DNA of 64,000 bases from Octopus sinensis (lineage: Eukaryota), in NCBI RefSeq assembly GCF_006345805.1, contig NC_043015.1, positions 25,296,001-25,360,000 on the forward strand, in the 5' to 3' direction. The translations under genes were made by a program, and so were the position numbers. Below are positions 18,574 through 59,610 of the stretch, in pieces (within the stretch, counting starts at the first letter, position 1; every line of letters starts with the position of its first letter). The notes beneath the pieces are model-generated. The model searched no databases, had not been told where the DNA came from, and was given only the letters and a program-made list of their open reading frames with translations.

Positions 18574-18784
18574 ATGTGAAATAGAAAGATGAATAATCTT
18601 GTAGTAGATTAATCAAAAGTTTAACCGATACCTTAGTAGCAAAAATCACAGCAGTAAACAGCACGGTTGGAGGTACAACCATCTGGCGTTGCAACCGTGC
18701 GTTGGTGCAGATAATTGAAATTAAAACATTATTGGTGAATTGAAGAAATGGAGCTGAACGCAGATTGAACAGAAATCGTTTTAT

Positions 18785-18871
18785 TTCATTCTACACGTGT
18801 TTCGAAAGGCACAAATTACCAAAATCCGATTGAATAATGGGACCATATTGTGTCTTTCTCTTCAGGAAGAA
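18785..18871 (-). ncRNA. Type I minimal hammerhead ribozyme motif, PLE pLTR, left arm
   Basis: Reverse strand: ttcttc-CTGAAGA-gaaag...ctttc-GAAAC-acgt-GTA-gaatgaa. Stem I, full core, stem II gaaag/ctttc, 2-bp stem III in palindrome ACACGTGT, GUA cleavage triplet. Confidence 0.88.
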
Positions 18872-19474
18872 AAAAGGAAATCCGTTGGAAAAACAAAAAC
18901 AGAACAGAGGCGGAGCAAAAAACAAATCGAACTGTGCTCCTAAGAGCCCATGGCGAAACTGTTTATCAGTGTATGTTGAGAACCGGTGGCTGAAGAATTC
19001 AACGGGTCAGGCATCGGTCAATCATGTGGGTGAGGGTGTATAGATGTTCTTTGTGACCGAGAATAAGTTCTGACTATTTAAGGAATATTGGATGTTTTAT
19101 AAGGGGCGAGAAAAAATCTACTTAGAGACGTGTGTGTGTGTATACTGTTCTATATATGTGTGTGTTGGCGTAGGGGTAGAAAACATTTTTTGTGTACGTG
19201 TGTGCGTTTGATCGTTCGGCTGTCAGTGGCTACTGCCGTGATAACCGTTGGGTGGCAGAAAGAAAAAAATAAAAAAAATATATATATATTATGTTTTATG
19301 TGTGTGTGTGTTCATCTAAGCCTGCCTTGTCAAGGAAACCCCCCGCTGTGAGAAAACCAAGCCCCGTTTGTCTTACAGGAGTAATTCCCCTTGCAGTGGT
19401 TAATCGTAGTTATCTTAAAGGCTATTTCAGAATTTGTTACCAAGGGCTATGGGTGCCGGTATTATTTATAAACG

Positions 19475-20566
19475 CTATTTAAAGGCCAGATAAGTGTAAC
19501 GCCGCCAATGGGGGCATCGAAAAGCCGACTGTAAGAGCCCGTTTACCATCCGGCCTCTGGCAAACAAAATATGGAAGAGTTCGGAGACACAAAGGTTGCA
19601 CTGTCTTCTGCCCCTATCAAATGGGAGGGCCACCGACAAAATTGACCATTCCAGCCTATAGCTTAAGTTCGCATCCTTCAGTCGCCATATTAGCTTACTG
19701 AGTCCCGTGGTCTGGCGCTTGTTCACGTCCCGAAAAGTTGCGTAATGGTTGGAGACACGCAAAGACAATCTTGAGGATGATGCCCCTACATAAGTGAAGG
19801 CATCTGAGTCCGTGTAAACCTTGCATTGGTAGACGGCGTTTTTGATCTTGGAGTTCGCCGACGTGAATCTTAATCTGCTAGGATTAGTTTCTGAAATTAG
19901 AACTGCGTTCCTGTCACTATATTCGTTCCGAGACCTGCAGCCGCTTACTACTCTATTTTCCACTACGTCACTATTAACTATAGGAATAACCCCTGATTCT
20001 CCACTATCTATCAGAGTGCTGTCATTGCTACTGCCCGTGGTACTGCTATTGCGGGAAATGATGCTGGGGATGCTAATGGGGCTCTCTACCCTACTCCAAT
20101 TATTACCGTCAACCACAACACCCCTATTTATAACTATACCCCTAGTGGGTACTCCCTGGCTGGAGCTGAGATTATGTGTCACTGTACTGGCTCTCATATC
20201 ATTATTACTACTATAATTATTCCTACTGAGCATTAAACCGGGAGCGGAAGAGGCTGTGCCTCCGGAAAAAGGTGATAGGGTCTTAGTAAGTAGCCTATTA
20301 TTATGGGAGGCGATTATCTGGGCGAGGTTTTTAGTGTTGGAGAAAGCTATCCTAACTTTATGTGAGTTAACCGTGGAGTAATATTTGGAATTTCTGGGGA
20401 AGTTATTGGCGATGGCTTGTCTAAACATGAGGGGGAGGTTAGTTCTAATCTGCTTACCAAAGGGGATTACAAACCATATATGCTTATTCCTATCAGTGTG
20501 ATGGGTCGGGACGCCAGCTCTCGCATTCGGGTGGGTGATTCTCGGATGAATAACGGGTCTTGGGTT
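19475..20566 (-). CDS. PLE ORF C-terminal part (post-RT region, low-complexity linker, GIY-YIG endonuclease); open frame, RT missing
   Basis: Frame stays open upstream of the track ATG (20428) through the loop: ...DRNKHIWFVIPFGKQIRTNLPLMFRQAIANNFP...NAVYQCKV...YVGA...RVSNH...LSKLIWRLKD...WSIL...CNLCVSE...RCPH. Matches my recollection of the Naiad-type IWFNPPFS..TN.G..F...HFP and CNLC..E..C.H motifs. Confidence 0.85.
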   Translation of the reverse strand, partial: NPRPVIHPRITHPNARAGVPTHHTDRNKHIWFVIPFGKQIRTNLPLMFRQAIANNFPRNSKYYSTVNSHKVRIAFSNTKNLAQIIASHNNRLLTKTLSPFSGGTASSAPGLMLSRNNYSSNNDMRASTVTHNLSSSQGVPTRGIVINRGVVVDGNNWSRVESPISIPSIISRNSSTTGSSNDSTLIDSGESGVIPIVNSDVVENRVVSGCRSRNEYSDRNAVLISETNPSRLRFTSANSKIKNAVYQCKVYTDSDAFTYVGASSSRLSLRVSNHYATFRDVNKRQTTGLSKLIWRLKDANLSYRLEWSILSVALPFDRGRRQCNLCVSELFHILFARGRMVNGLLQSAFRCPHWRRYTYLAFK

Positions 20567-20568
20567 AG

Positions 20569-21552
20569 AATGCGAGAGCTGGCGTCCCGACCCATCACAC
20601 TGATAGGAATAAGCATATATGGTTTGTAATCCCCTTTGGTAAGCAGATTAGAACTAACCTCCCCCTCATGTTTAGACAAGCCATCGCCAATAACTTCCCC
20701 AGAAATTCCAAATATTACTCCACGGTTAACTCACATAAAGTTAGGATAGCTTTCTCCAACACTAAAAACCTCGCCCAGATAATCGCCTCCCATAATAATA
20801 GGCTACTTACTAAGACCCTATCACCTTTTTCCGGAGGCACAGCCTCTTCCGCTCCCGGTTTAATGCTCAGTAGGAATAATTATAGTAGTAATAATGATAT
20901 GAGAGCCAGTACAGTGACACATAATCTCAGCTCCAGCCAGGGAGTACCCACTAGAGGTATAGTTATAAATAGGGGTGTTGTGGTTGACGGTAATAATGGG
21001 AGTAGGGTAGAGAGCCCCATTAGCATCCCCAGCATCATTTCCCGCAATAGCAGTACCACGGGCAGTAGCAATGACAGCACTCTGATAGATAGTGGAGAAT
21101 CAGGGGTTATTCCTATAGTTAATAGTGACGTAGTGGAAAATAGAGTAGTAAGCGGCTGCAGGTCTCGGAACGAATATAGTGACAGGAACGCAGTTCTAAT
21201 TTCAGAAACTAATCCTAGCAGATTAAGATTCACGTCGGCGAACTCCAAGATCAAAAACGCCGTCTACCAATGCAAGGTTTACACGGACTCAGATGCCTTC
21301 ACTTATGTAGGGGCATCATCCTCAAGATTGTCTTTGCGTGTCTCCAACCATTACGCAACTTTTCGGGACGTGAACAAGCGCCAGACCACGGGACTCAGTA
21401 AGCTAATATGGCGACTGAAGGATGCGAACTTAAGCTATAGGCTGGAATGGTCAATTTTGTCGGTGGCCCTCCCATTGATAGGGGCAGAAGACAGTGCAAC
21501 CTTTGTGTCTCCGAACTCTTCCATATTTTGTTTGCCAGAGGCCGGATGGTAA
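20569..21552 (+). pseudogene. Inverted copy of the PLE ORF fragment, frameshifted
   Basis: Same sequence as the left arm but a 1-nt deletion near 21470 (cccattgata vs cccatttgata) shifts the frame; the C-terminus continues in ORF 21447-21632. Confidence 0.88.
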
Positions 21553-22222
21553 ACGGGCTCTTACAGTCGGCTTTTCGATGCCCCCATTGGCGGCGTTACA
21601 CTTATCTGGCCTTTAATAGCGTTTATAAATAATACCGGCACCCATAGCCCTTGGTAACAAATTCTGAAATAGCCTTTAAGATATCTACGATTAACCACTG
21701 CAAGGGGAATTACTCCTGTAAGACAAACGGGGCTTGGTTTTCTCACAGCGGGGGGTTTCCTTGACAAGGCAGGCTTAGATGAACACACACACACATAAAA
21801 CATAATATATATATATTTTTTTTTTTTTTTTCTTTCTGCCACCCACGGTTATCACGGCAGTAGCCACTGACAGCCGAACGATCAAACGCACACACGTACA
21901 CAAAAAATGTTTTCTACCCCTACGTCAACACACACATATATAGAACAGCATACACACACACACGTCTCTAAGTAGATTTTTTCTCGCCCCTTATAAAACA
22001 TCCAATATTCCTTAAATAGTCAGAACTTTATTCTCGGTCACAAAGAACATCTATACACCCTCACCCACATGATTGACCGATGCCTGACCCGTTGAATTCT
22101 TCAGCCACCGGTTCTCAACATACACTGATAAACAGTTTCGCCATGGGCTCTTAGGAGCACAGTTCGATTTGTTTTTTGCTCCGCCTCTGTTCTGTTTTTG
22201 TTTTTCCAACGGATTTCCTTTT

Positions 22223-22309
22223 TTCTTCCTGAAGAGAAAGACACAATATGGTCCCATTACTCAATCGGATTTTGGTAATTTGTGCCTTTCGAAACACGTG
22301 TAGAATGAA
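22223..22309 (+). ncRNA. Type I minimal hammerhead ribozyme motif, PLE pLTR, right arm
   Basis: CTGAAGA 22229-22235, GAAAC 22291-22295, GTA 22300-22302; predicted cleavage after 22302. Confidence 0.88.
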
Positions 22310-22468
22310 ATAAAACGATTTCTGTTCAATCTGCGTTCAGCTCCATTTCTTCAATTCACCAATAATGTTTTATATATATAAACTGCATTTGGGTATGATT
22401 AGTATAATTTTGGTAGTAATGACTCTGTCCCTCCTAGTGTGAGGCATTTATGTGTAATAATGCCCTCT

Positions 22469-22532
<64 letters not shown>

Positions 22533-22535
<3 letters not shown>

Positions 22536-22974
22536 CTGTAAAATAATATGTTACAATTACTCAATAGTCAAGATAAAACTCTGAGTTTCAGATGCCGAAG
22601 TGGAAATCCATAACACCATCTCTTTAGTTATCTGGCCATCTGAAAAACGCTATGAAAAAATACCGTTATACAAAGGGAAATTACTGTATTATAATTCTGC
22701 TCGTGTATGAGTTTGTATATATATATGCGTATATATTTGGCGAAAGATGCAAGTGAAGATGTGTACATTTTCATAGTGACATATAAGTACGCATGTGGGT
22801 TCGCAAGCAGAATTATAATACAGTAATTTCCCTTTGTATAACGGTATTTTTTCATAGCGTTTTTCAGATGGCCAGATAACTGAAGAGATGGTGTTGTGGA
22901 TTTCCACTTCGCCATCTGAAACTCAGAGTTTTATCTTGACTATTGAGTAATTGTAACATATTATTTTACAGATA
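22533..22974. mobile_element. Hairpin element with ~168-bp inverted arms, each carrying an HHR motif
   Basis: Arms ~22533-22701 and ~22806-22974, ~105-bp spacer; left end abuts (TA)n; ~65 bp of extra sequence separates the right arm from the next (TA)n at 23040. Confidence 0.9.
22874..22936 (+). ncRNA. Type I hammerhead ribozyme motif
   Basis: agataa-CTGAAGA-gatgg...ccatc-t-GAAAC-tcaga-GTT-ttatct: 6-bp stem I, 5-bp stem II, short stem III, GUU triplet, one extra U before G12. The left-arm copy (22571-22633, minus) has CTAAAGA, a mutated core. Confidence 0.75.
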
Positions 22975-23039
22975 AATTTCTTCTATTTACATAATATTGA
23001 GGTCTCTTTCTTTCTTTTGTTATCTTACCGTTTTTACCA

Positions 23040-23880
23040 ATATATATATATATATATCACCTTAACCGACCAGTCCGTCGGGCATCCATTTGACACCACT
23101 GGTCACAGCACGCTGTCCATTCCTCTCTGGATTGCGCCTTTCTCATCCACATGATCCCAATCGTCCTCCAGAAATTGTAACTCCACCGTCGTGGAGGCCT
23201 TCCGGGTGGTTGTTTCGGCGTGCGCAGGTACCACTCGACAACTGCGCAGGTCCACCAATTATCAGTGAGCCGGGCGACGTGTCCAGCCCATCTAAACTTG
23301 CTGTGTGTATACTCTGCAATGACATCCCTCATGCCGGACTTCTTTCTGATGATTTTGCTACTGATGTGTTCTCTCAACGAGATACCAAGCATTGACCTTC
23401 CCATGGCTCTTTGAGCTGTTACCAGTCTCTGCTCTTCTCTCTTTGTGGTAGCCCATGTTTCACTACCATATAACATTGCAGGTAGAACTGTACTGTTGAT
23501 GAGGTTGGCGTGGGTGGTCCTGTCCAACCTTCCCTTGAGCACATCCCTTATGCCATTAAAGGCGGTGTCAACATCAATGGCGGGCTCCTCACCCACCTTC
23601 GTTTCGCTGACGACATCGTACTCATTGCTGAAACTACGGATCAGCTTCAGACCATGCTGACAGAGCTTGACATCAAAAGCTCTGCAGTACGTCTCAAGAT
23701 GAACCACATGAAAACGAAGTTCATGCGGTCAGACAACGTACCAACAAGTCGAATAGGGATCAGCAGTGATGAAATAGAGGAGGTAAGGGAATATGTCTAC
23801 CTGGGACAGAAAGTGAATATGTGCCAAGATATCAAAAAGGAGATCTCACGGAGAGTAAGGGCCTGATGGAAGGTGTTTAA

Positions 23881-23881
<1 letters not shown>
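23040..23881 (-). mobile_element. RTE-clade LINE, 5'-truncated, with its 5' part inverted
   Basis: Minus strand 23563-23057 encodes AFNGIRDVLK...LPAMLYGSETW...WAGHVAR...GRPPRRW...stop, then (TA)n. Plus strand 23564-23881 encodes the immediately preceding RT part GVNING..LRFADDIVL...YVYLGQ...RRVRA*WKVFN. Confidence 0.92.
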
Positions 23882-23937
<56 letters not shown>

Positions 23938-24223
23938 TATGGGCTTCTTTCAGTTTATGTGTGTGTGTGTGTATATATAAATGAATGAATTAATATATCC
24001 TAAGAAACATCTCTTTATGCATCTCTAACCTGTATACTTGAAAACAAATTCAATCTTCATAATGAAATGAATGTAGTCAATTAGAAACACCCAAGTTTAT
24101 GACTGGTATGTACTATTTTTATTCTGGTGTAGGATCAACTCCAAAGCAGGATTTTGGGTCAGAAACTTGGGAAGCAAAACTACGAACTCCGATATTTTAG
24201 ATTAATTTACTAATACTCATTTT

Positions 24224-24260
<37 letters not shown>

Positions 24261-25802
24261 TGATGGTCACCACTACCAACCTAACAAATCTATTATTACA
24301 ACCACTTAGCATTACTCGTTTGACATCACCACTACATTAAAGCCCTAACTACCACCACTACCATGCATAGTCCCCACTCTCACTACTACCATTTCTGCAT
24401 TACCAACACCAACACCACCAGTTTCACTACCAAAACTGCAACTCTCACTCCCCCATCCACTTCTCTCTCTCTCCCTCCCCTCCTCTCTCTTATTTATACG
24501 TCAATTTTATGCCATTATGAAATTTGAAATTAATACCTATTTTCGTTTTTAATCTCACTATTTTTAGCACACGAAGTTATTAATGTATAATTAATTAACA
24601 ACTTTATTCATTAGATTAATAACATTTCTGCAAAGAATGTCTATTTTATTATCGTTGTTTGTTTATTGTATTTTAAAAGTGATACCTTAGATACAACAAC
24701 GCAACAACGGAGGTAAACTGATAAGGTGAGAAAAGCTATTGTAAATATGTTGTGTATGCACGTATTGAATGGCTGTGTAAGAGTGTGTGTGTATGTGGGG
24801 GGAGGGATGAACAAGTAAGGATAGGGCCACTAATTAAATTGAATGTAATTAGCTTTTATATAGAGATAGACAAATACACACACACACATACACACATACA
24901 CACACATACACATATATATAAATATATATATACAAAGAGTGAAAGAGGTGGCATGGAGTAATAAAATCATTTTTATCATGGAGTAAATGTAATCCATTAA
25001 GCAACATGTTTCTGTAATTATTAAATTAGCCACATGTTAACATTCTACATGTGCTGCCCAAAATGCTAATTCTGTTTTCTGATGACATGAGTAAAACTTG
25101 TCCTTTCATGGGTCATGTGTTGAGATGTATTTCCCTGTTCCAAAACATAGATTATATTCTGGGGGCAGGTCACATGCCAACAACAGAAAGGATTAAATCT
25201 TGATGGGGTGGGGTGGGGTGGAAAGGTAGAATCCTTTCTGAGCTGGACGAGATGCATTTTCCATTCTGATACTTTACATTCTGAGGAAGGGTCAACTTCG
25301 CCAAGCCCTAGGGGTCAACGTAATTGACCAACTTCCCCTCTCTTCCCTGAAAACAATTGCATCTCAGGTTGTCTTAGCAACATCACAACCCTGTCCTGCA
25401 CTGGCACCTGTAGAAATTACTGGGTGAAAGTATCAACAGGATATAAAGGTTAATTTTGTGTTCCTAGATGTGTACCTCCATCTCCACCTTTGGCAAGAGT
25501 GCCGGTTCTTGAAGATGTCACTGCTTATATCAACATCATCATAATCATTGTTACCATGGTATATTTAGACACAGCTATGTGGTTAAGAATTTTGCTTTCC
25601 GACCACATGGTTTCAAGTTCAGGTTCCGTCTGCATGTTACCTTGTACAAGTATCATCTACTCTGACCCAGGACTAGACTAACCAAATCCTTCAAGATGGA
25701 TGTTGTAGATGGAAACTGAAAGAAGCCTCTTCTACATGTGTAGTTTTAATTTGAAATAATTGCTTCTTATTTAATATACTTGTTTAATAATAATAATGAT
25801 AA

Positions 25803-25861
<59 letters not shown>

Positions 25862-25863
<2 letters not shown>

Positions 25864-26940
25864 TCTGAGAATTGGTCCATTTATACTGGCCATTCTTGCA
25901 CAATTCACCCACCTTTCAGAAAACTTGCCATCAGACATCACTCTCCTCTCTAACCTCATCTTCCTTTCCAAGTGAAACTTGAAAAAGTTGATGAGGCCTT
26001 GACCAAAGAGAAAAATGTCTGACTTTAGCCCTTTCAAACGGGTCCACCATACAACCTCTTTCACCACAGCCACTAGGCACAGGAAAACGGCCTTGCCCTC
26101 CTTGTTAAAGGAGGTCGGCGGGGCAATCTTCACTATGGATTCAGCTGTTAGCCGGACCCATCCTATACGTGACAGTAGCTGTTCGACATAAACCCATAGT
26201 TCAGCAATACTCAGGCACTGGACGAGTGCGTGCAGAATGGTTTCGTCATCCTGGCAACACCTCGGGCAGGCCCGGCTGACAGCACTTCTGTGCCAGTAGA
26301 GTTTATCCTGAACAGGCAGAGCCCCTCGGTAGCACTGCCAGGCGAGCCACCTCTGGAAATTATCCATTGGCCCTGGCCCGAAAGTCCTTCTGAACAGACA
26401 GCTCAGTTCGTTATCATAAACGCCTAGAGTTTCCCCGAGAACGTTGTCACATTTTTCCTCCACTAACCCTCTATAGAACGCTAGAGTGGAACTAAAACCG
26501 ATTGCATTGCCTGCTTTGCGGAGGGCGGAGAGAGCTTGACGGCACTCGAGGTGCCAAGAGCCCTTTCTCGGTCTACATTTGATCCAGGTCTGCAGCTCTG
26601 TCAAAGAGACAAGCTGCGGAAAGTCGTGTCTGACAAAAGATGACCACACCTGTTCAACGTCTAGGAAATGCTTGAGATGTTGCAGCCTGAGTGCATGTCT
26701 GCGCATCAGTAACCACGGCATGCCAAGGCCTCCATTCAGTGGTCGTTGACAGCAGATGGATCGCCTGACCAGTGGCACCTGACCCTTCCACAAAAAGTCG
26801 AAGAGCAGGCGTACCAGCTTGGCCAACCAGTGGTCGGGACAAGGGACGACGGTCAAGCGGTAATAGTTGATGGATGCGATGTACGCATTCGCCACCTCCG
26901 CTCGACCTTTCAGGGACAGCTTCCTCTCGGCCCATTTCAG
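25862..26940 (-). mobile_element. Tx1/L1-clade LINE ORF2 3' fragment (RT C-terminus plus zf-RVT-like region), frame open
   Basis: LSLKGRAEVAN...FDFLWKG...GGLGMP...WQCYRGALPV...CPRC..DETILHALVQC; runs into (ATT)n at its 3' end. The first ~35 aa of the track ORF come from an adjacent SINE. Confidence 0.9.
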
Positions 26941-27357
26941 AATTGAAAGAAGAAAATACTGATAACAATAATAATAATCCTTTCTACTACAGACACAAAG
27001 CCTGAAATTCATAAGAGGGGAATAGTTGATAACATCGACCCCAGTACTCAACTGGTACTTATTTTATCACCCCGCCCCCAAAAGGATGAAAGGTAATGCT
27101 GACTTTGGTGGAATTTGAACTCAGAACATGAAGACAGCTTTTGCTTGGCATGCTAAAGATTATCCCAGCTCATAATAATAATAATAATAATAATAATAAT
27201 AGTCCTTTCTACTATAGGCACAAGGCCTGGAATTTGTGGTGATCACATCGACCCCAGTATTTGAGTGGTACTATTTTATCAACCCTGGAAAGAGGGAAGA
27301 CAAAATCACCCTCGGTGGAATTTGCACTCAGAACGATTCTGTCAGTTCTCACAGCCT

Positions 27358-27405
<48 letters not shown>

Positions 27406-28768
27406 TATAATTATAATAATAATAATACGGGAAGCCTCTGAGAGATCAAACAACTTACAAGAAAAAGTATCCAATCTGCCTAGTCTTGAAAAAATAATGA
27501 AAGAAACATTGGGTAATAGAGTCATAGATAAACTTATCCTAAAATCAGAGGAACAGACTGTATGGACATGGCTGGAGCAGCTTTGAATCACTGGTTAATC
27601 TGGAGCTAAAATATAGATCAATGATAACAGTTTCTAACATAACTAAGTGTAGGTCGATATAAGCTCACACCTTAAAGGGCTGTTACGAAATGTGATAAGG
27701 TATTATGTTCACAATAAAGTAAATTTCTGATCAAGAGTTGGTTTCTCTAGGAAATGAGATGAATAGATAATGTGCATGAAAAACATTTACTTTGCAGGAT
27801 AGACAAAATGTTGTTTGCTTTTTGACTGACAATTTCAATTACACTCAAGATACTGCCGGTTTCAAAGATTGGCTTGTTTGAAGAATAAAGGAAATCTAAA
27901 GAAAACCAAATTGATGAAAAGCATTCTTAACTTGGTACAAGATCGACAGGGAATTCAACGGAATTAAAGATATTAAGAATATCCTTCATCATAATAATGA
28001 AAAAAAGAAAAAAATGAAATAGTGCAAAAATAATGGCAAAAATTCAAAGAATGTATATTAACAAAGCCGCCAAGTTACCTTAAAACAACAAGTTTGTAAT
28101 TGAATGCCAAAAGTGCGTCAAACAGTAGAAAAAGAAAAACGGAAGTGTCTTGGGTTTACTAGGAAGCTGGAAGGCAGCTGAAACTATTAGAAGTCCAAAA
28201 GAAGTCTAAATTGATATGCAGGAAGATAAAAGGTTGGAAGCACACGGGAGAAAAATTTACCGTTTGTTGATGCAAATGCATTTGTTCAAAGAATGAAACT
28301 ATAAAAGAGAATAATGTATACGTCTTTTATATTTTTTATTTTTATTCTTTTTTATGAGTGTTGATTAAATAATAAAAATTTAAATGGAGTGTATAAAACG
28401 GCTACACACAAGTTGTTTCATATCGAAGAAACGGCATCGAAAACAAAATAAGCAAAAAAGAAAAGAAAAAGAAAGGTTGCATAAATTATGAGTAGTTCAA
28501 TGTTTGTGTTAGCAAGTATTAGTTTGGATCCTGTTCAGATTAACTTAAACTTTGATCTTTCTAGTACCAATAAAATAGATAGTGTGCTGGCATAAGAGAT
28601 CAAACAAATTCCACAGCCATTGCAATAGTCTAGCCGTGTGTGCAAGTTACTTTCACCAAACAGTTGATGTGTTATCTCCGAAACCATTGATCTACAGCAG
28701 CCACAGCCATAACAATGCAACATTAACATTAGAATCTGTATCCAAGATTAGTTTTGAAAATGTTAAAA

Positions 28769-28820
<52 letters not shown>

Positions 28821-31800: not shown

Positions 31801-32223
31801 ACAGAAAACAATAACACTTAAAGAGAACAAAACAGGGAAAATTAAATTTCTTTAGTATTCTATATATTTACTCTCTCACTGACAGATTCCCATTCTTGTT
31901 TGTGCATTTATCCATTGCTATCTATCCATCTGTCTAGCTATAAATTTCTGAAACGATTTTGTATTTGAATTTGTGGGTACGACTTTCTCCCCGTCAATAC
32001 AGAAAATTCACATGCACACACACACACTATGTGTGTGTGTATATGTGTAAAATATTTTTATACACAGAGGAGATGCTGGACAGGACTCCTCTTTGCGTAT
32101 TTATGCATACTAACCACTAGTAATAAATTATTTCAATCTATTACCCTCATATTTACGATAGTAATATTTATATATATATGTATACATATTTATATATATG
32201 TATACATATTTATATATATGTAT

Positions 32224-32261: not shown

Positions 32262-32750
32262 TGAAATGGATAAATGAATTATCTTGTTACGGATTATTCA
32301 AAATTTAACCGATACCTGGGTAGCAAAAATCACAACAGAAAAAACACGGTTGAAGTTACGACCATGGGGTGTCGCAACCGTGCCTTAGCGCGGATAATTG
32401 AAGTTTAATATATTTAGTGAAGGGAAGAAATGGAGCTGAACGAAGATTCTACAGAATTCCTTTTATTATTTTCTACACATGTTTCAAAGGCCGCAAATTT
32501 CCAAATTCGGATTGAATAAGGAGACCATTTTGCAGCTTTCTCTTCAGGAAAATCCAGGAATTTAAATCTCCAAACAAATGCGCAGCAAGCAATTCGAACA
32601 AAACGCTCCTTAGGAGCCCATGGAATGGCACAAACTGTCTCTCAATGTGCGTTGACGTCAGGGGGGTGGAGGCCGACGAAAAAGTCCGTTGGAATAAATC
32701 GAGGTCAAACTGCGGTCAAACCTTCGTTCAGCTCCATTTCTTCCCTTCAC

Positions 32751-32759
<9 letters not shown>
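32262..32759 (-). mobile_element. PLE pLTR relic related to the 18.6-kb element, with a short inverted terminal copy
   Basis: 32262-32655 aligns by eye with 18577-18980; 32408-32445 recurs as a 38-bp reverse complement at 32722-32759; (TA)n on both sides. Confidence 0.85.
32469..32552 (-). ncRNA. Type I hammerhead ribozyme motif (slightly decayed)
   Basis: ttttc-CTGAAGA-gaaag-ctgcaaa...tttgcgg-c-cttt-GAAAC-atgt-GTA-gaaaa; perfect stem I; lacks the C that closes stem II in the 22.2-kb copy. Confidence 0.8.
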
Positions 32760-32819: not shown

Positions 32820-32822
<3 letters not shown>

Positions 32823-34448
32823 TTGCGGCCAAAATGTTCAGAACGGCATTATTTTCGTCAGAAAAGTAGATATAATTTTTTATCAAAGTTGTTTTATATT
32901 CTATAATTTTCACAGATAATAAATACGATATTATTTGTTGTTGCCTGAGATTTTGGTGTAATTTGAGAGGATAATACAAAAGTTATGGATGATTTAATGA
33001 TTTACTGCAAAACCCATGGCAGGCCGAAATGATCAGAACGGCTGCTTTTACTCCGTGTTTTAGTATATTTAACTGGCGAATTCTAATGTTTTGAATTTGT
33101 TTACGTGACGGTTCGTTTACTAAACATTACTAAGAATATTTGCAGTGTACTTTGTTAATATAATGCCACTTACTCCATTACCAATTCGTCAGCAGATTAT
33201 TAAGCTTCGAAGGAAGGATAATTTAAGTATTGGATCTATTGCAAAGATTGTTAACAAGTCAAAAAGTGTTGTACACGGTATTCTTAAGGTCTACGATGAT
33301 TGTGGTTCGTGTGAAGCAAGAAAGTTTACAGGTAGGCCAAGAAAAACGACCAAGAGAGAAGATCGTGCTATGGTAAAGTTGGTTAAAAAGGACAGATTTA
33401 AAACTGCTGCTGCTGTTTCTCAGAAAATGAGCATAGTACTGAAGAAAACTTTATCTCGAAAACCTGTGTCTCGTCGTTTAGTTGAACATGACCTACAAGC
33501 AAGAGCACCTGCAGTGAAGCCACTGATCAGCTCCAAGAATAAAAAGTGTTGTCTTACCTTTGCAACCGAACATGTGTTGTGGTCTCAAGAAAAATGGCAA
33601 ATGGTACATTTCAGTGATGAATCTAAGTTTATGTTATTTGGCTCAGATGGGAAAAGGTACGTTCGTAGAAAAGTAGGTGAAAAATTGTCATCTAAATGCC
33701 TTAAAACTAGTGTTAAATTCGGTAGAGGAAGTGTCATGGTTTAGGGGATGATATCTGGAGATGGTGTGGGCCCTTTGGTGTGATTACATGGAAAGGTAAA
33801 TGCAGGAGTTTATAAACAACTTGTAAAAGATCATGTCTTGCCTGTGCTGAGAAATTCAACTAAGCGACCACCATATTCATGCAGGACAATGCCCCATGTC
33901 ACAAGGCTAAGATGGTCATGAACTTCCTCAAGGCTGAAAAGGTTATTGTTATGGATTGGCCTGCTCAAAGCCCAGATCTCAATCCTATTGAAAATGTATG
34001 GAATATTCTAGGAGAACATTCGAAAGCCAGAAATCCTAAAACAACTGAGCAATTATGGAATGCCCTTCAGGAAGAATGGAATAAGATCACCCAGCAAGAA
34101 ATGGAAAATTTAATTTCCTCATGCAGTCAAAGATGTCAGAGTGTGATTGAAGCTAAAGGGCTTTACACTAAATATTAAATAATTCCTGTATTCTCTGTCA
34201 TTTTTGATTATTTTGTTATTTTTTCAACCGTTCTGATCATTTTGGCCGCCATGGGTTTTGCAGTAAATCACTAAATCATCCATAACTTTTGTATTATCCT
34301 CTCAAATTGCACCAAAATCTCAGACAATAACAATTAATATTGTATTTATTGTCTGTAAAAATTATAGAATATAAAACAACTTTGATAGAAACTTATACCT
34401 ACTTTTCTGACGAAAACAGTGTCGTTCTGAACATTTTGGCCGCAACTG
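32820..34448 (+). mobile_element. Full-length Tc1-family DNA transposon, IR/DR type
   Basis: TA|cagttgcggcc...ggccgcaactg|TA, ~220-bp TIRs, internal direct repeat gcc(a/g)aaatg(t/a)tcagaacgg at both ends of each TIR. Confidence 0.96.
33163..34178 (+). pseudogene. Tc1 DD34E transposase, disrupted
   Basis: HFSDESKF, QDNAPCH and SPDLNPIENVW, with 34 residues between the second D and the E; stops at ~33742 and ~33781 and a frameshift before 33879. Confidence 0.95.
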
Positions 34449-34930: not shown

Positions 34931-35430
34931 TGATAATAATCCTCGATGGAATTTATGAACATTTAATGCATTGCTACATGTGTTTCCACAAGTCACATGT
35001 CTTTTAAGATCCCAGATTTTATTCCTGGGATGCTTACAGTGTAGTCTGTAGTAAGTGTAGGCATCAGGGGGTTGATCATCTTTGTGGATTCATTTCTTCA
35101 GGCAATATAACATTAATGGATGTTTCGCAGAGGGAATGTTTATCCCTCTTGACCAGTATGAAGGATGACGGAGTTATGATTGACATAACTCAGGTTGACA
35201 TAACTCAGTCAACCTTCATACTGGTCAAGAGGGATAAACACTGCCTCTGCTAAACATTATTGCCTGAAGAAATGTATCCATGAAGATGATCAACCTGATG
35301 CCACAGACACTATGGACTACACTGTAAGCATCCCAGGAATACGGACTGTAATCATAAGAGACGTGACTTGTGGAAACGTGTGTAGCAATGCATTAAATGT
35401 TTATAAATTCCATCCAAGGATTATTGTTAT
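34931..35430. mobile_element. ~500-bp fold-back element with HHR-like motifs in both arms
   Basis: Arms ~34931-35178 and ~35198-35430 are diverged reverse complements; ATTGC-CTGAAGA (35259-35270) ... GAAAC-gtgt-GTA-GCAAT (35373-35389), mirrored at 34970-35106. Confidence 0.8.
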
Positions 35431-45977: not shown

Positions 45978-46024
<47 letters not shown>

Positions 46025-49000: not shown

Positions 49001-49040
49001 ATAGCAACAGTGATTTTGAACAACAACAACAATAAAATTG

Positions 49041-49136
<96 letters not shown>

Positions 49137-49676
49137 TTAAAGGTTAATTAACAGTAACAATAACCAGCATCTGTGGTTTACAAAGTGCAAATATATTGGT
49201 TGAAAATTCCTTGCAATGGAAAAAATAAATAAATAAATAAATAAAGTAAAGCAACACAGATATAAAAAACATTAAAAAAAATCTGTTATCAGAAATTGAT
49301 AAGAATTGATTTCAATTGTAAAATTGTAAAGTTTGTTTGTTTGTTGTTGTTGTTGTTATTATTTGGCTGTTGTTGCTTTACACATAAACACAGCATTCAT
49401 CTTTTTTTTTTATTGATTTTGTTATTGTGTGTTGTTTTTACACATAAACACAACATTCATTGCTGTTTATTTGACTTTTAAAAACTAATTTTTTCCCTTT
49501 CCTCAGCAAATATTTCAGTTGTTCACTTAAAATAGAGATGTTTATCATATTTGTTTGATGGGTGGGGAGTAGAGGGAGCAAGGGGAGGGGGTTGCCGAAC
49601 CGGTCTTCTGGTCTTTGATAGATAAATAGACAGTCAGACAGACTGACAGAGTTTGATAGGGTTACACAGAAAGATA

Positions 49677-49707
<31 letters not shown>

Positions 49708-52700: not shown

Positions 52701-53337
52701 TATTGCTTAACCCGTTATCTCTCCCAGACCACACACCACTGTATTAAAATAAGAATGAATACATCTACTTTTGCAGTTCTAGATACACTACAACTGATAT
52801 AAAAACCAAACAGTCACAGCTAGAACACTCTTAATCATAACTCTTCTAAATCAGTTTGGACCTGGGGTTTCATAGCTGTGGCACCATCAGTCTTAACCCA
52901 AACTACATCAGTTAAATTTCCCTCAGATCACATCTTTTGTAAAAGAGGGAAAACACTTTAGAAAGACACCTTAGGTAATGTTGTTATAAATACTTTATGA
53001 ATTGAAATTAAGATGAAATGATTACAGCTTCAAACATCTTTGATAAATTCAATAAATCTCAGTCAAGACTCATACATTGGAAAAACTGTTACATTTATTG
53101 CAGCTGCTTTTGAGATGTGAGTTCCATGTTCTGGAGAGTCTATATCTGGAAGAAGATGTTGAGCTTAAAACTGGAATGCCTTTGAAAGGAGGCTTTACTC
53201 ATTCACCTAAGGCCTCAGCTAAACCATAACAACAGCATCAGCACACACATAACCAGCTAATGTCAGTTCTAGAATTCAACCAGAATTTCAACCTCTGCTG
53301 GCATAAAGGACATGTTGATTGATGATGAGGATGAATG

Positions 53338-53371
<34 letters not shown>

Positions 53372-53441
53372 GGTGGTGGTGGTGGTGGTGGTGGTGGTGG
53401 TTTGGTGGTGGTGGTGGTGGTGGTGGTGGTGGTGATGGTGG

Positions 53442-53473
<32 letters not shown>

Positions 53474-54086
53474 GTAGCAAAGCAGCAGATGAAAACAACC
53501 TAGAATTTAGCTGCTCAATTCTTACCTATCTTCACTAGTTTGAACCTGGTTTAGAAAATACTTTCAATCAATTTGAAGTAAAATATAATTCTAACTTTTA
53601 AGAAGCTTTGAAGTTTCCTTAACAAAAAAATTTTAGAAAATGCTATAATTATTTTTAATAAATGGAAATCAATGCAAGAGGTGTTGGAAACAAAAATTTG
53701 CAGAGAGAAAAGAAAAAATACAAATGGTGAGAGGTTTTAGAAAACAAACAACTCTATCATTAATTAATATAATTTAAAATAACATTAATTAATAAAAATT
53801 GATGCTTAAAAGGTTGGGTTGCAAGAACTATACATTTACACACATACACATATATATGCCTTTTAATAAAGAGGAGGAATATATACATACATACATATAT
53901 ATATTATATATATATATATATATATAATATATATATACATACACATATATATACATATATATACATATATATACATATATATATATACATATATATATAT
54001 ATACACATATATATATATACATATATATATACATATATATATACACATATATATATATACATATATATATACATATATACACACAC

Positions 54087-54143
<57 letters not shown>

Positions 54144-54310
54144 TATATACGCATATACACACACATATATATGTATATATATACACATATATACATATAT
54201 ATATACATAAACACATATATACATATATATACATATATATATACATATACATACATATATATGCATACATACATATATATACATATATACATACACATAT
54301 ATACAGATCC

Positions 54311-54348
<38 letters not shown>

Positions 54349-55196
54349 ACACATGTAGCCAAAATATATGTGTGCATGTGTGTATATATACATATCTTCT
54401 TTCAAAACACTTAATAAAGTAATAAATATTTTGTAATATTTTATTTATAAAGACAGGAGTCAAAGTTGTATCAATATATTTAAAAAAATGGGAAATTAAA
54501 TTTTATAAGTGTTAACAGATACTAGTTATGATAATTAATTAGCAAGTGTGCAATTAACTATATAGTGAAACCAAGGAAATAATAGAACCACAACTCTGAA
54601 CAAAATTGTCTACATTTCTGACATGAAAAAATGAGAAAAATTGTTTGCTGAACTGAGTTTATTTGTGTTGTGAGGCAGGGTGAGTTAATTTTTTTTTTTT
54701 ATAGGAAATGAAGGATCTCCACAGAAGGGGCTATGTTCACTTTGCTTATTCTCACTTCTTTTCTCTTCAATCCCTTTCTCTTTGCTGGAGATTTTTGCTG
54801 CAAATATTATCAGATTCCAAGGTTTCAAATTGGCTCCCTTACTTTGATAGAGGTTTGATTCAATGATAAAACGCAATTTTGACTTCTTCACTTGAACGAA
54901 AATTTGACAATATCTTTAATCAATCAGACGCAAGTTTGTTCTATTTTCCCTCTATGATCAGCAACATACAGTTCTAAATATTATTGGCACAGGCAATTTG
55001 CTGTTATATATTGATGTTACTACAGGAGATACAATGACTGAGTTAGAAGCAGAAGCACGATGACTGTGCAGTTAAAATGATGGAGAAAATGATTAGTAAG
55101 TTTAGATGTGATTACAGCCATTGTTTCATTGACAAACAGACATATAGACAGGTTTCCTCTCTCCTTCTTTTTCTATATATATGTACTATGTATATT

Positions 55197-55258
<62 letters not shown>

Positions 55259-55303
55259 CAAATATATACATATATATATATATATATAATATATATATAT
55301 AAA

Positions 55304-55341
<38 letters not shown>

Positions 55342-55729
55342 TAAATAGATAAAAAGGTGAATATAGACATACATATATACATGTATGTGGAGGTGCAATG
55401 ACCCAGTGGTTAGGGCAACAGACTCGTGGTCGGAGGATCAGGGTTTTGATTCCCAGACCAGGCGTTGTGTGTGATTTTTGAGCGAAAACACCTAAAAGCT
55501 CCTCGAGGCTCTGACAGGGGGTGGTGGTGATCCCTGTTGTACTCTTTCGCCACAACTTTCTCTCACTCTCTCTTCCTGTTTCTTGAGTAACGTTGAGATG
55601 GGGAGAACACATACGCCACAAAAACCGAGAAACCGAGCCCATGAGCCTGGCTAGGCTTGAAAAGGGTGACGTTTATGTTTTTATATACATATATACATAT
55701 ATACATATATATGCATATATATAATATAT

Positions 55730-55763
<34 letters not shown>

Positions 55764-56586
55764 AACACACACAAATATGTATATACACATATTTACATAT
55801 ATGTATAAAAATGTAAATATATGTATATGTGTGTGTATGTGCATGTGTGTGTGTGTAAATTCAAAATGGCTTCTAGATATTTGAACATTTGTTGGTCAAC
55901 TCTAGTGAAGAAGTTGTAATACAGTTGAAGTGACTTATTTTCATTAATTTTACGTCTATGTGTAGTGTACAGGATGCAGCTGCTACCTTGATAGCAGGCT
56001 GCTGTTTGGTATATTTAGCAACGTCGTTTGTGTGTGTGTGTATGAAAAAGAAAGAATGAACTGAAAAAACATGTGGTTATCACTTCAGAGGATGCAACTT
56101 ATAATTCAAACATAACTGTTAGAGAAAATAAGAGATTAAGAAGTCTCCTATAGCTGTTTCTAGAATAGCTTTGCATTTGGTGCATATCTCATTGAGCAAA
56201 GATTTCCAAATAAAACCAACTATTCCATCTTCAGAGAGAAAGAGTTAAGAAATATCCTTAATAAAGGCTATTTCCATCATTGTGTTTATTGTATATACCT
56301 ATTACATTACATCATTAGACACAATTTTATCTGTATTTTGTGCGTGTGTGTCACAAACTTAGTCTCAATGCTGCTATCATCAGAAGCACTTAAAATAGGG
56401 TAAAATATCCAAATAACTACCTGGTGGTAGGTACCTGTTTAACTAATTCAGTAAAGGGGTGGATAACAATATATAAGTTGGTGCTTGTTTCACATAATCA
56501 AAAACCTGTTCCAGAGACAAATGGCACAAACTACTGACATCTAAACAAATGGCACAAACTCTGACATGTAAACAAATACTGGACTA

Positions 56587-57017
56587 CAGTGTTTTATTTA
56601 CGAGATGAGGAATTATGTACATTATTTACATTTGACGGATATTTGTCCTCATCTTCTTTGTTGTTAACACAATGTTTTGGCTGATATACCCTCCAGCCTT
56701 CATCAGGTGTCTTGGAGAAATTTCGAACCTGCCTTCTAATTCCTTTGGTATTTTCCGATATTATTATTATTATTCAGGTCAGTCCCTGGAATCAAACTCA
56801 GAATCTTGGGGTTAGTAGCCCATGCTCTTAACCACTATGCCATAAGCCAGTGGACATATGGCATAGTGGTTAAGAAAAATACCATAGCAATAGGAACCCA
56901 GGTTCAAAATTTCCCCAAGACACCTGATGAAGGCTGGAGGGTATATCAGCTGAAATGTGCTAACAACAAACAAGATGAGGACAAATATCCGTCAAATGTA
57001 AATAATGTAAATAATTT
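56587..57017. mobile_element. Head-to-head pair of tRNA-headed, HHR-tailed SINE-like elements, copy 1
   Basis: Minus arm: tRNA-like head 56842-56783, (AAT)n, HHR 56711-56666, tail. Plus arm: truncated head 56859-56874, HHR 56919-56961. Flanked by the 13-bp direct repeat aaatactggacta (56574-56586, 57018-57030). Confidence 0.85.
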
Positions 57018-57776
57018 AAATACTGGACTATCTTCTCGGTGGCTCTTACCTACATCTCATGGCTAACAAGGAGGTCACGCTTGAACTCAGCACTTCAGCA
57101 TCACATTCAGTGACATAGCACATAGCACCAAATTCTGACAGAAAACTGCAGTGCCTATTTAAATCTTGTCGACTTGAGGAATTTGTTTTGTGAGATATAT
57201 GACTCGGTCATGAATGTAAAATACATTTCAATGTGACAAAAAAGTGAAAAAAGAAATCTATAGAATATGTTTGAAAGAGGTGAATTACTACAAGTGAAAT
57301 CAAATATTCAGGTTTTAATATAATATAGCTGAGGAAAGAACGTTTGCAGACAAACAGCAACAGTTTCTTCTTCTGTGAAGAAAGCTACCTTCTATGAATT
57401 CAATAGTATTTACGTAATACGATCATGTCATTCACACGTCTGTTAGCTCACAAATAAAAAAAATATCCCTCAAAAATAATACAGACCTGTACAGCAGCAG
57501 AAAGCTTAACCTGATTACATACATAAAACATGAGGTCAGAGCAAACAGATTCCTATTCATGTAAGAATGCAGTATTCCAAGAAAGCAATCTAATCGATGT
57601 TAGGGCATGAAAAAAAATGTGTAAATGATTATCAAAGAGTTCAGACAAGTTCAACTCATAGACAAAATGAGAATTTTTTTTATCCCTTAGAAAATAAAAA
57701 TAAGGGTAGAACATGCATTCAGATGACAAGCAGTATGTTGGAGACAAACATATATATATATATATATATACACATG

Positions 57777-57809
<33 letters not shown>

Positions 57810-57854
57810 GTGTTCATGTTTATTGGTAGCTATAGATAAATGTGCATGCATGCA

Positions 57855-57895
<41 letters not shown>

Positions 57896-58948
57896 AATTG
57901 TAAGCATATGTGTACTTATGCTGTGTGTGTGTGTGCGTTTGCGTATGTGCATGTATAGTATTAATTTATACTCCAACCTCAAAACAAAACATCTGATGCT
58001 CTAATCACTTAGCTAAATTTTGACATGGTATGATTTGAGGTCAATTTAGCTGCTATTTCTAGCAGGCTGACCATCCAATCTCATTAGGGTCACTCTCAGC
58101 TGGAGCTTAACCCATTTTCCAAGATGTATAAGTGACTGAAATTGCAACATCCTCCACTGGGTAGGACACAAGTCTGTCACAATATTAACTTCCCAACTAT
58201 TGCTGAAACTTATTTACAGCCAAGTGGACTGGGCCAACATGAAATGAAGTGTTTTGCTCAAGCACACACAGCTTGATCAAGGAACTGAAACTACAATCTT
58301 ACAATTGTGAATGCAATGCTCTTCCCACTGGGCCACATGTTTCCACAAGCATTTATCTACAAATGTGAAAATCTTTTGGAAACTTTCCTTGCCTTCATTG
58401 TTGGTGATATTATTTAGCTCAAGAGTGGATCTGGTTTTGCAGATTTATCATCAAAGTCATTCCTGTTGTGAGAACTTTGTCATCAATGCTTCTGGGTCAA
58501 TTCATTCCAACCTGTTTTTTGCCAGAAGTAATTTCATCTAAGTAGCTCTTTAAATCATTAAGGAGGGCCTGAAAATGTTGTGAGGAATGTCCCTTCCTTT
58601 TTGATTAAAACATCAATAAAAACAAATTGCCATATTATTGGTCAGATACAAACTATTTATGTTCATTGAAGGATCTTTCAAAAACTTCCCTTCGACTGAA
58701 AGATCTCCGGCTACATTTACAGGAAGAGTTGAACTTGGGGTTATAAGTCAATAAAGCAGTTATCAATTTGATAGTCATCCCACTGCCTGCCCTCGAAAAG
58801 TTTCATGTCACCAGGTACATTGGTATGGGAAGGATTAACTGAGACCAAAGTGGTTGAAGACACCACAGTACAAATAGAGACAGTAATGGTGGTGAGGCTT
58901 CCTATCATTCAGGAGGAGGTTATAAGATATTCTTGAGAAATTTATCTC

Positions 58949-59091
58949 GTTATTTACATTAGACGGATATTTGTCCTCATATTCTTTGTTGTTAACACAA
59001 GGTTTCAGCTGATATATCCTCCAGCCTTCATCGGGTGTCTTGGGGAAATTTCGAACCTGGGTTCTCATTTCTAAGGTATTTTTTGATAATA

Positions 59092-59138
<47 letters not shown>

Positions 59139-59259
59139 CATTATTATTATTCATGTCACTGCTTAGAATTGAACTCGAAATCTTGGTGTTAGTAGCCCAT
59201 GCTCTTAAACACTATGCCATATGCCCACAGACATATGGCATAGTGGCATATGGCAGTGA

Positions 59260-59349
<90 letters not shown>

Positions 59350-59377
59350 TGATAATAAAAATTATAATAATAATAAC

Positions 59378-59427
<50 letters not shown>

Positions 59428-59610
59428 TTATAATAATAATAACAACAACATCGAAAAATACCCAAGTTCGAAATTTCCCAAAGACACCTGATGAAGGCTG
59501 GAGGGTATATCAGCCAAAACGTTGTATTAACAAACAAGATGAGGATAAATATCTGTTAAATGTAAATAATGTAAATAATTCCTATCTCTTAAATCTAGAA
59601 CTGTATTAAC
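58949..59610. mobile_element. Head-to-head pair of tRNA-headed, HHR-tailed SINE-like elements, copy 2 (opposite polarity)
   Basis: Minus arm: head 59219-59160, (AAT)n, HHR 59039-58994. Plus arm: deleted head, long (AAT)n, HHR 59483-59528, tail. Flanked by the 8-bp direct repeat tttatctc (58941-58948, 59611-59618). Confidence 0.85.

Follow-up and report, generated by a model that had tools for sequence, protein, structure and literature searches.

A 64-kb stretch of the Octopus sinensis genome, referred to below as the window (assembly GCF_006345805.1, contig NC_043015.1, forward-strand positions 25,296,001 to 25,360,000), contains six head-to-head inverted repeats associated with outward-reading motifs that resemble the type I hammerhead ribozyme (HHR). 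We consider it likely that these loci are a mixture of insertion products of Penelope-like elements (PLEs) and short hammerhead-bearing elements that probably use the PLE machinery. Numbered by position, the loci fall into four families: family A comprises L1 (18574-22372) and L3 (32262-32759), family B comprises L2 (22530-22977), family C comprises L4 (34935-35425), and family D comprises L5 (56587-57017) and L6 (58949-59610).

An earlier note on this DNA had described six head-to-head inverted repeats, and the description holds at every locus, at L3 by virtue of a 41-nt inverted piece only (32719-32759 against 32408-32448), the locus being for the most part a single copy. L1 is a 3.8-kb palindrome whose arms are 99.4% identical over 1808 nt (7 mismatches and 4 gaps) around a 39-nt spacer; the arms of L2 are 172 nt long and 98% identical, with a 104-nt spacer, and those of L4 are ~245 nt long and 80% identical. 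Overall arm identity is 76% in L5 and 68% in L6, rising to 82-90% over a common body of 122 alignment columns. BLAST comparison between the loci joined only L1 with L3 and L5 with L6, in keeping with the note's further claim that the families share no sequence beyond the hammerhead core. The window as a whole is rich in TA and CA microsatellites and in decayed transposable elements (fragments of long interspersed elements [LINEs], a Tc1/mariner element, and short interspersed elements [SINEs]). Tracts of (TA)n adjoin 6 of the 8 ends of L1 to L4, and (TA)n-adjacent positions make up 4.9% of the window. A separate ~450-nt self-complementary block of TA/CA-rich microsatellite (53916-54369) is the source of many spurious inverted-repeat and miRNA-like matches.

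Two loci assigned to Hydra-clade Penelope-like elements

On its sequence features, family A is a Hydra-clade PLE with a canonical HHR and (TA)n targets, because the motifs shared by its homologues are those listed by Craig et al. (2021, PMC8557442) for this clade, namely, RWK, DKT, CxCX5C, and a GIY-YIG endonuclease (EN) without the CCHH motif, accompanied by canonical HHRs and (TA)n target sites. The open reading frame (ORF) of 317 aa in the long arm of L1, whose copy in the short arm (20668-21552) is frameshifted, has two Octopus sinensis proteins as its sole close relatives, and its C terminus aligns with ~700-aa proteins that are plentiful in data from marine metagenomes and invertebrates. 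The consensus of these homologues comprises RWK (as RWKA.F), DKT (as ADKT), CxCX5C, GIY/YIG, CxLC..E, N, and CxH, and alignment to them delineates the endonuclease motifs VYQCKV, YVGASS, RVSNH, CNLCVSE, VN, and CPH in the octopus ORF. The copies in the window are truncated and lack the reverse transcriptase (RT); the full-length relative of family A in O. sinensis has VQSDKT at the diagnostic DKT position. In an AlphaFold model of the 317-aa ORF, residues 190 to 300 have a predicted local distance difference test score above 90, and the best fold matches of this predicted domain are the GIY-YIG nucleases Hpy188I, T4 EndoII, and I-TevI, with weak E values of 0.05 to 2. A Pfam search with the arm ORF matched no family, and the Pfam GIY-YIG model reached an E value of only 0.08 with the O. 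sinensis copy; likewise, a sequence profile search of the PDB with the arm ORF gave no match. The CxCX5C linker, which is present in the homologues as CNCR....C, is replaced by an asparagine/serine (N/S)-rich stretch both in the window ORF and in O. sinensis (L001 11074-11559).

The comparison with a complete element was made in ~63 kb of O. sinensis DNA, comprising the regions around two PLE proteins. One of these (L001 8757-12441) holds a ~3.6-kb full-length relative of family A, which in 5'-to-3' order consists of (TA)n, a 42-nt inverted tail, a 667-aa RT ORF, a 161-aa EN ORF, an HHR, and a 3' end lying in (TA)n. The long arm of L1 matches this element (L001 10445-12441) at 64% on the DNA level, and the long arm of L3 is 86% identical to L001 11996-12441. 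Since the full-length relative has the same tail, HHR, and (TA)n surroundings, L1 is two 5'-truncated Hydra-clade PLE copies joined head to head, and L3 is a 457-nt 5'-truncated copy of a related PLE family bearing a 41-nt inverted tail. The link to PLEs drawn in the earlier note is thereby confirmed for these two loci, through the GIY-YIG ORF of L1 and the hammerhead in the 3' untranslated region (UTR) of both, and its proposal to match the 3' ends to full-length PLEs succeeds for family A. As a side observation, the same (TA)n tract of O. sinensis contains another, related PLE copy immediately downstream of the first (L001 12466-13442), of which only the initial ~940 nt are left; an inverted piece of ~37 nt, ending at the outer 3' site, stands in front of it.

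Family A has two alternative 3' ends, about 147-148 nt apart, each of which adjoins (TA)n; we call the inner one site 1 and the outer one site 2. Site 2 is used by the long arm of L3 and by L001, and the 3' end of the L1 long arm adjoins (TA)n at 18553-18573; site 1 is used by the O. sinensis copy L003. All inverted family-A arms in the window (L1 and L3), along with the tail of the full-length O. sinensis copy, stop at site 1. That tail (L001 8757-8798) is the same as the one in L3 and is 100% identical to its source at 12269-12310. Hence, the inverted tail has an identical extent at two independent insertions, corresponding to RNA positions ~+25 to +66 past the predicted HHR cleavage site.

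The 99.4% identity of the L1 arms, taken with the report that such structures cause assembly problems (PMC8557442), raises the question of whether the 3.8-kb near-perfect palindrome was created by the assembly, for instance from a chimeric long read. The flanks of the palindrome are unique and different on each side, one arm is longer by 148 nt and ends at a different, family-specific site, and substitutions, a frameshift, and a microsatellite block of 94% identity set the arms apart. Further, the rule of one long and one short end recurs at L3 and in O. sinensis. From the unequal arms, the unique flanks, and this recurrence, we rejected an artefactual origin, which we regard as extremely improbable.

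The hammerhead of the L1 long arm reads tttcttc CTGAAGA (55-nt stem II domain) GAA ACACGTGT A/gaatgaa, where the slash marks the predicted cleavage site, here at 18792/18791; the predicted site in the short arm follows 22302, 70 nt from the arm end. Helix III is the palindrome ACACGTGT or its CpG-decayed form. Across four diverged copies, two of them from O. sinensis, 86.8% of the cells are paired, compared to 37-53% in slid controls, and 6 pairs have changed on both sides, compared to 0-1 in the controls.

Hammerhead motifs in the arms

The conserved core CUGANGA...GAAA...UH and helices I to III occur in type I order in all four families, fully in family A and with deviations in B, C, and D. 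Of the assignment to type I HHRs made in the earlier note, the order of the core and the canonical form of family A thus stand, and the deviations qualify it for the remaining families. All of these motifs are predicted HHRs with putative ribozyme activity.

Motifs were sought with a custom descriptor that places stem I, CUGANGA, stem II of up to 75 nt, GAAA, a short helix III, and UH in type I order, and expectations were derived from 200 dinucleotide shuffles of the window. Exact-core matches numbered 6 against 0.21 expected, and allowing up to one core mismatch gave 21 against 7.4 ± 2.8; a tighter version of the descriptor gave 4 against 0.11. Seven of the 21 matches lie inside the loci, which occupy 9.9% of the window, and every one of the seven faces outward. 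L4 escaped this search, its stem II domain of 102-108 nt being above the 75-nt limit; a descriptor without the stem II requirement gave 6 matches against 0.12 expected, and a covariance model (R1) built from the family-A HHRs recovered the L4 motif in both arms, again facing outward (E values of 0.017 and 0.67). The outward reading claimed in the earlier note is therefore seen in all in-locus descriptor matches and in both L4 arms. The predicted cleavage site lies 70 nt from the end of the short arm in L1, 66 nt in L3, 47 nt in L2, ~40 nt in L4, and ~57 nt in L5, matching the 40-70 nt given there. With 6 exact cores against 0.21 expected, and a probability, from the shuffle rates, of about 1e-3 or lower that such a motif would arise in the correct orientation in a 172-nt arm, we rejected chance as the origin of the motifs.

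Two to four solitary HHR-like motifs were also seen outside inverted repeats. Those at 56241-56142 (-) and 1889-1790 (-) resemble family A in that their cores are exact, their stem II domains are long, and their helix III is nearly palindromic; those near 1466 (-) and 57329 (+) are weaker. They are probably old remnants of PLE 3' UTRs.

A SINE-like family with a probable decayed hammerhead

Family D is a SINE-like element with an RNA polymerase III (Pol III)-type head and a motif that is probably a decayed PLE-type minimal hammerhead. In order, it consists of a box A (TGGCATAGTGG; an exact consensus match in L5 only, with one mismatch in L6), a degenerate box-B-like site ~45 nt downstream in both loci, a (TAA)n array, a body with the minimal hammerhead, and a tail of tandem GTAAATAAT repeats. 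The earlier note had termed these copies tRNA-headed. No tRNA is called in either head by Rfam; ARAGORN, at default and relaxed thresholds, reports nothing for the L5 head, and its one call for that of L6 is poor, scoring 70% of the default. Two positions of the hammerhead core are ambiguous, two arms reading CAGCTGAAA and two reading CAGCCAAAA, and this TG/CA split is, as far as sequence can tell, the signature of ancestral CpGs. It points to an ancestral HHR of the form gacac CTGATGA a GGCTG...CAGCC GAA ACGT T/gtgtt (that is, GAAACGTT/GTGTT following CAGCC), which, in this restored form only, has a bulged nucleotide after A9, a G10.1-C11.1 pair, and a palindromic 15.2-16.2.

The two arms of each family-D hairpin stop at unequal points of the tail, and the second arm has an internal deletion of the head that differs between L5 and L6. 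A single direct repeat brackets each whole hairpin, of 13 bp in L5 and of 8 bp in L6, the latter sitting 7 nt past the end of the homologous tail; target-site duplications that vary in length in this way are a feature of tRNA-derived SINEs. Because of these ragged arm ends, differing head deletions, and single repeats, the features of L5 and L6 fit target-primed reverse transcription, rather than a transposase acting on fixed termini. The arm-to-arm identities (82-90%) are star-like, which fits both formation of the hairpin at insertion and transposition of the hairpin as a unit.

One alternative is that family D is a tRNA-derived SINE mobilized by a LINE, with the hairpins arising by LINE twin priming or by adjacent landing of two copies and the HHR being a vestige or a chance resemblance. 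Its tandem GTAAATAAT tail is of a kind found at many LINE 3' ends, the core is damaged in all four arms, and the window contains a different SINE whose head-to-head pair, 99% identical, has no HHR. Against these stand the single repeat around each hairpin and the fact that both arms end in the 3' tail, whereas in classical twin priming the second cDNA starts from an arbitrary internal site. The restored motif, moreover, fits four independent features of PLE minimal HHRs, and the division into TG and CA at the two ambiguous positions of the core is what ancestral CpGs would be expected to leave. We accordingly consider LINE mobilization quite improbable and prefer a PLE-related origin for family D.

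Two short non-coding hairpins

Families B and C are short non-coding hairpins with variant hammerhead-like motifs. In the right arm of L2 the motif reads cagataa CTGAAGA gatgg..ccatc T GAA ACTCAGAGT T/ttatctt, with a near-palindromic helix III and an extra U between 11.1 and G12; only this arm has an intact core, that of the left arm being CTAAAGA (G5→A). For the right arm, the minimum-free-energy fold has a z score of -5.25, yet A9 pairs with the extra U in it. The L4 motif is tattgc CTGAAGA (108 nt) GAA ACACATGT A/gcaatg in the left arm and tattgc CTGAAGA (102 nt) GAA ACGTGTGT A/gcaatg in the right arm. Combined, the arms give GAA ACRYRTGT A/gcaatg. The two halves of the core are present, stem I is 6 bp long, and helix III is palindromic; stem II is CAYRAAG/CTTGTG and is offset from A9 by 8 unpaired nt.

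These two loci, and conceivably L5 and L6, could instead be miniature inverted-repeat transposable elements (MITEs) or foldback DNA transposons that depend on a transposase for their movement, with an HHR-like motif that was captured or is a fossil and has no role in mobility. The arms of L2 are symmetric to the final base and have TA on both sides (TA/TCTGTAAAAT...ATTTTACAGA/TA), those of L4 also have symmetric ends, TA/CAGTG is found at 2 of the 4 family-D ends, and a Tc1/mariner element, likewise in (TA)n, is nearby. The termini of L2, however, are unlike the CAGTTGCGGCC termini of this resident mariner, and no transposase relative was found. The improbability of a correctly oriented chance motif in an arm of this length, noted above, counts against the transposase explanation as well. 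The family-D arms stop at different positions, with short and long tails, and are bracketed by repeats of 13 and 8 bp. To our knowledge, no superfamily with terminal inverted repeats produces flanking repeats of these lengths. In general, the fixed termini of MITEs are absent from L5/L6 and L1/L3, which have ragged or alternative ends, and L2 is compatible with them. Taking these findings together, we judge the transposase explanation unlikely and retain use of the PLE machinery as the probable origin of families B, C, and D.

The Tc1/mariner element in question (32820-34448) shares its (TA)n tract with L3. Its termini read TA/CAGTTGCGGCC, its terminal inverted repeats measure ~200 nt, and its transposase (HTH_Tnp_Tc3_2, DDE_3) is decayed.

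Table 1. Positions of the hairpin arms, hammerhead motifs, and flanking repeats in the window
Feature	Position	Strand	Description and basis
L1 long arm	18574-20528	-	5'-truncated Hydra-clade PLE copy, facing outward; inverted repeat and DNA match
L1, 3' extension (long arm only)	18574-18721	-	148 nt between sites 1 and 2; from aligned L1 and L3 arms
L1 long arm, family-A hammerhead	18785-18872	-	Descriptor, covariation, model R1
L1 long arm, 317-aa ORF	19475-20428	-	RT-EN linker, N/S-rich insert, GIY-YIG endonuclease
L1 central spacer	20529-20567		39 nt, unique sequence
L1 short arm	20568-22372	+	Stops at site 1, then (TA)4-5
L1 short arm, family-A hammerhead	22222-22309	+	Descriptor, model R1
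L2 left arm	22530-22701	-	HHR-like motif 22634-22570; outer end within long (TA)n
L2 right arm	22806-22977	+	HHR-like motif 22873-22937; descriptor
L3 long arm	32262-32718	-	457-nt 5'-truncated PLE copy; HHR 32554-32467; model R1 and descriptor
L3 inverted tail	32719-32759	+	41 nt, copy of 32448-32408; stops at site 1 in (TA)n
L4 left arm	34935-35178	-	HHR-like motif 35108-34968; covariance model, stem-II-free descriptor
L4 right arm	35199-35425	+	HHR-like motif 35257-35391; covariance model, stem-II-free descriptor
L5 direct repeat	56574-56586 (+) and 57018-57030		13 bp, AAATACTGGACTA; brackets whole hairpin
L5 full-length arm	56587-56846	-	Box A, degenerate box-B-like site, (AAT)n, body, long tail; decayed HHR 56713-56664
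L5 second arm	56855-57017	+	Head internally deleted, short tail; decayed HHR 56917-56963
L6 direct repeat	58941-58948 and 59611-59618		8 bp, TTTATCTC; brackets whole hairpin
L6 first arm	58949-59223	-	Full tRNA-like head, (TAA)n array, body; decayed HHR 59041-58992 (CCGATGA)
L6 second arm	59233-59610	+	Head internally deleted, long (TAA)n, long tail; decayed HHR 59481-59530

A model for hairpin formation and its standing

We propose that the hairpins would form in a single integration step. Staggered nicks made by the endonuclease would expose two 3'-OH ends, and both of these could prime reverse transcription near the 3' end of the element RNA, in a form of twin priming. In family A, either of two AU-rich sites, which could base-pair with the (TA)n target, might be used for priming. 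The two cDNAs would then extend toward each other and be joined at their 5' ends, a step for which a CATATG palindrome at the 5' end of the element could serve in family D. The hammerheads would face outward because both cDNAs start at the 3' ends of the element and join at the 5' ends, so that these 3' ends, with the hammerheads 40-70 nt inside, come to lie outermost; the stagger of the nicks would become the target duplication. The second cDNA could be long, as in L1 (1.8 kb), or could abort after ~41 nt, as in L3 and the O. sinensis copy. The hairpin would thus be a by-product of integration rather than a functional unit, and the hammerhead would act as a dimer on multimeric or read-through transcripts.

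The earlier note had gone further in proposing that many octopus 'MITEs' are hairpins mobilized by PLEs, forming a system of autonomous and non-autonomous elements, a generalization that reaches beyond the 64 kb analysed here. For L1 and L3 the non-autonomous status does not hold, as both are dead copies of the autonomous element itself. Mobilization by PLEs is supported to the extent that family A is a PLE and family D is retroelement-like; in the ~63 kb of O. sinensis DNA compared, families B, C, and D had no autonomous counterpart.

A number of observations weigh against our interpretation. The absence of a partner PLE for families B, C, and D comes from a BLAST search of the six loci against the ~63 kb of O. 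sinensis DNA, in which only family A was matched. The head-to-head shape also arises without an HHR, since the hairpin of the tRNA-like SINE 'F' (17509-17801; head-to-head 119-nt arms of 99% identity around a (TA)7 centre) has none. Among the non-coding hairpins, the TA on either side of L2 and its symmetric arm ends are both what a Tc1/mariner-type MITE would show, no target duplication is recognizable at L4, and the extra U of L2 and the 8-nt bulge of L4 lie outside published HHR descriptors. In family D, the core is damaged in all four arms of L5 and L6, by G12→A, by U4→C, or by the loss of 3 nt, the intact HHR is a reconstruction from just four related arms, and the doubled GTAAATAAT tail equally fits a tail of the LINE type. 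The octopus copies of family A lack the CxCX5C linker that has been proposed to direct (TA)n targeting. The scan with Rfam Hammerhead_1 that the earlier note had suggested came up empty on the window: the Rfam hammerhead models gave no match at the gathering score or at an E value of 10 or below, even when stretches of 460-540 nt were searched, and the Rfam matches that did appear in these searches were all microsatellite or hairpin 'miRNA' artefacts, neither hammerhead nor tRNA. Finally, PLE HHRs as published cleave poorly in vitro.

Relation to known systems

In terms of overall architecture, the octopus loci are a new example of a published kind rather than a new kind of element, because head-to-head PLE insertions, PLE HHRs, and SINE-like elements bearing HHRs have all been described. 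Inverted 5'-truncated copies and tails of 30-40 bp are typical of PLE insertions (PMC8557442). Family A agrees with the Hydra-clade PLEs of that study in its DKT RT, its GIY-YIG EN without CCHH and with the CxxC, E, N, and CxH motifs, its canonical HHR, its insertion in (TA)n, and its inverted 5'-truncated copy with a short tail at the 5' side. The octopus copies differ in being 3.6 kb long, against a published 'generally <3 kb', in having the N/S-rich insert instead of the CxCX5C linker, and in having as their tail an inverted, fixed 41-42-nt piece of their own 3' UTR.

The minimal HHRs of PLEs have a nucleotide between A9 and 10.1, a G10.1-C11.1 pair, and a palindromic 15.2-16.2 (Cervera and de la Pena 2014, PMC4209133), and their location in the PLE pseudo-long terminal repeats (pLTRs), their palindromic helix III, and their action as dimers are already published (PMC4209133, PMC6765202). 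The octopus motifs resemble them (PMC4209133; Lunse et al. 2017) in their type I order, the palindromic helix III that implies dimer action, and their occurrence mostly in dispersed, truncated copies, and the restored form of family D would add the extra nucleotide between A9 and 10.1 and the G10.1-C11.1 pair. Pairing on opposite strands is likewise shared with Schistosoma, in which paired minimal HHRs lie 100-700 bp apart (PMC4209133). The octopus motifs differ in that the stem II domain is very long in family A (55 nt) and in family C (102-108 nt), an extra U sits at the 11.1/12 junction in B, an 8-nt bulge is present in C, and D is intact only as a reconstruction.

A closer parallel for family D is offered by Sm-alpha and Sj-alpha of Schistosoma, which, in the summary accounts of them, are SINE-like elements with a Pol III head and an HHR (Ferbeyre 1998, Laha 2000, reviewed in PMC6765202). 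Both they and family D are short non-coding retroposons that combine a Pol III-type promoter head with a hammerhead. In these accounts the schistosome HHRs are canonical, active, and largely tandem, whereas the HHR of family D is minimal and decayed and stands in head-to-head hairpins with target duplications. The animal non-LTR retrozymes, for which derivation from PLE pLTRs and mobilization by PLEs have been proposed (PMC7761336; bioRxiv 10.64898/2026.07.22.740005), are also non-coding elements with HHRs; they differ in being tandem repeats that give rise to circular RNAs, and no tandem direct copies were seen at any of the six loci.

The proposed mechanism resembles twin priming of LINE-1 in that both target strands would prime reverse transcription and thereby generate an inversion. 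Twin priming, in which both nicked target strands are the primers, was reportedly described for LINE-1 by Ostertag and Kazazian in 2001. At the octopus loci, in contrast, both cDNAs would begin in the 3' region of the element, so that the product would be a genuine head-to-head repeat and not the inversion of a 5' segment.

Other elements in the window

SINE 'F' is present in further copies: its block (17509-17825; ~1 kb) is duplicated at 16491-17079, with 16620-17079 being 99.8% identical to 17640-18100, and a solo copy lies at 55388-55574. An RTE-type LINE fragment (23057-23866) has its closest proteins in turtles, arowana, and nematodes (58-73% identity), with weaker matches in sturgeon (about 41-43%); a protein search with this RTE-like ORF returned no octopus protein, and the patchy spread is reminiscent of horizontally transferred RTEs. 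Two further ORFs are ordinary decayed retrotransposon remnants, namely, a C-terminal fragment of a LINE ORF2 with a zf-RVT match (25771-27051, -) and an ORF with C2H2 zinc-finger matches only (62345-63256, -).

Implications

Several features of these elements may be new. One is the existence of an octopus Hydra-clade PLE that lies in (TA)n despite lacking CxCX5C; further ones are the two alternative 3' ends of this PLE and its inverted tail of constant extent, from +25 to +66 relative to the cleavage site. The others are the great length of the stem II domains and the occurrence in a cephalopod of a SINE-like element that bears a minimal hammerhead. The loci provide a worked example of PLE insertions in a cephalopod genome, with head-to-head arms, two (TA)n-anchored 3' ends, and a 41-nt inverted tail. 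The first of these features bears on the role in target choice that has been proposed for the linker: (TA)n targeting by a PLE without CxCX5C argues against the linker being required for it.

Short hairpins that repeat finders would label MITEs can be retroelement products, which matters for the annotation of repeats in octopus, where about 900 SINE families are still unclassified (PMC13282606). A more far-reaching reading, which we put forward as doubtful, is that a guild of PLE-mobilized, HHR-bearing short elements, Pol III SINEs included, forms hairpins in one step and is a main source of the dense double-stranded RNA (dsRNA)-forming loci and of ADAR hyper-editing in octopus; were it true, many elements now filed as MITEs or as unclassified SINEs would be misclassified. 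Porath et al. found in octopus an exceptional density of long, near-perfect dsRNA loci and the strongest hyper-editing signal, the repeats there not being annotated (PMC5625713). If the pattern seen in this window extends across the genome, one-step insertion of PLE hairpins would be a simple source of the dsRNA-forming loci of octopus.

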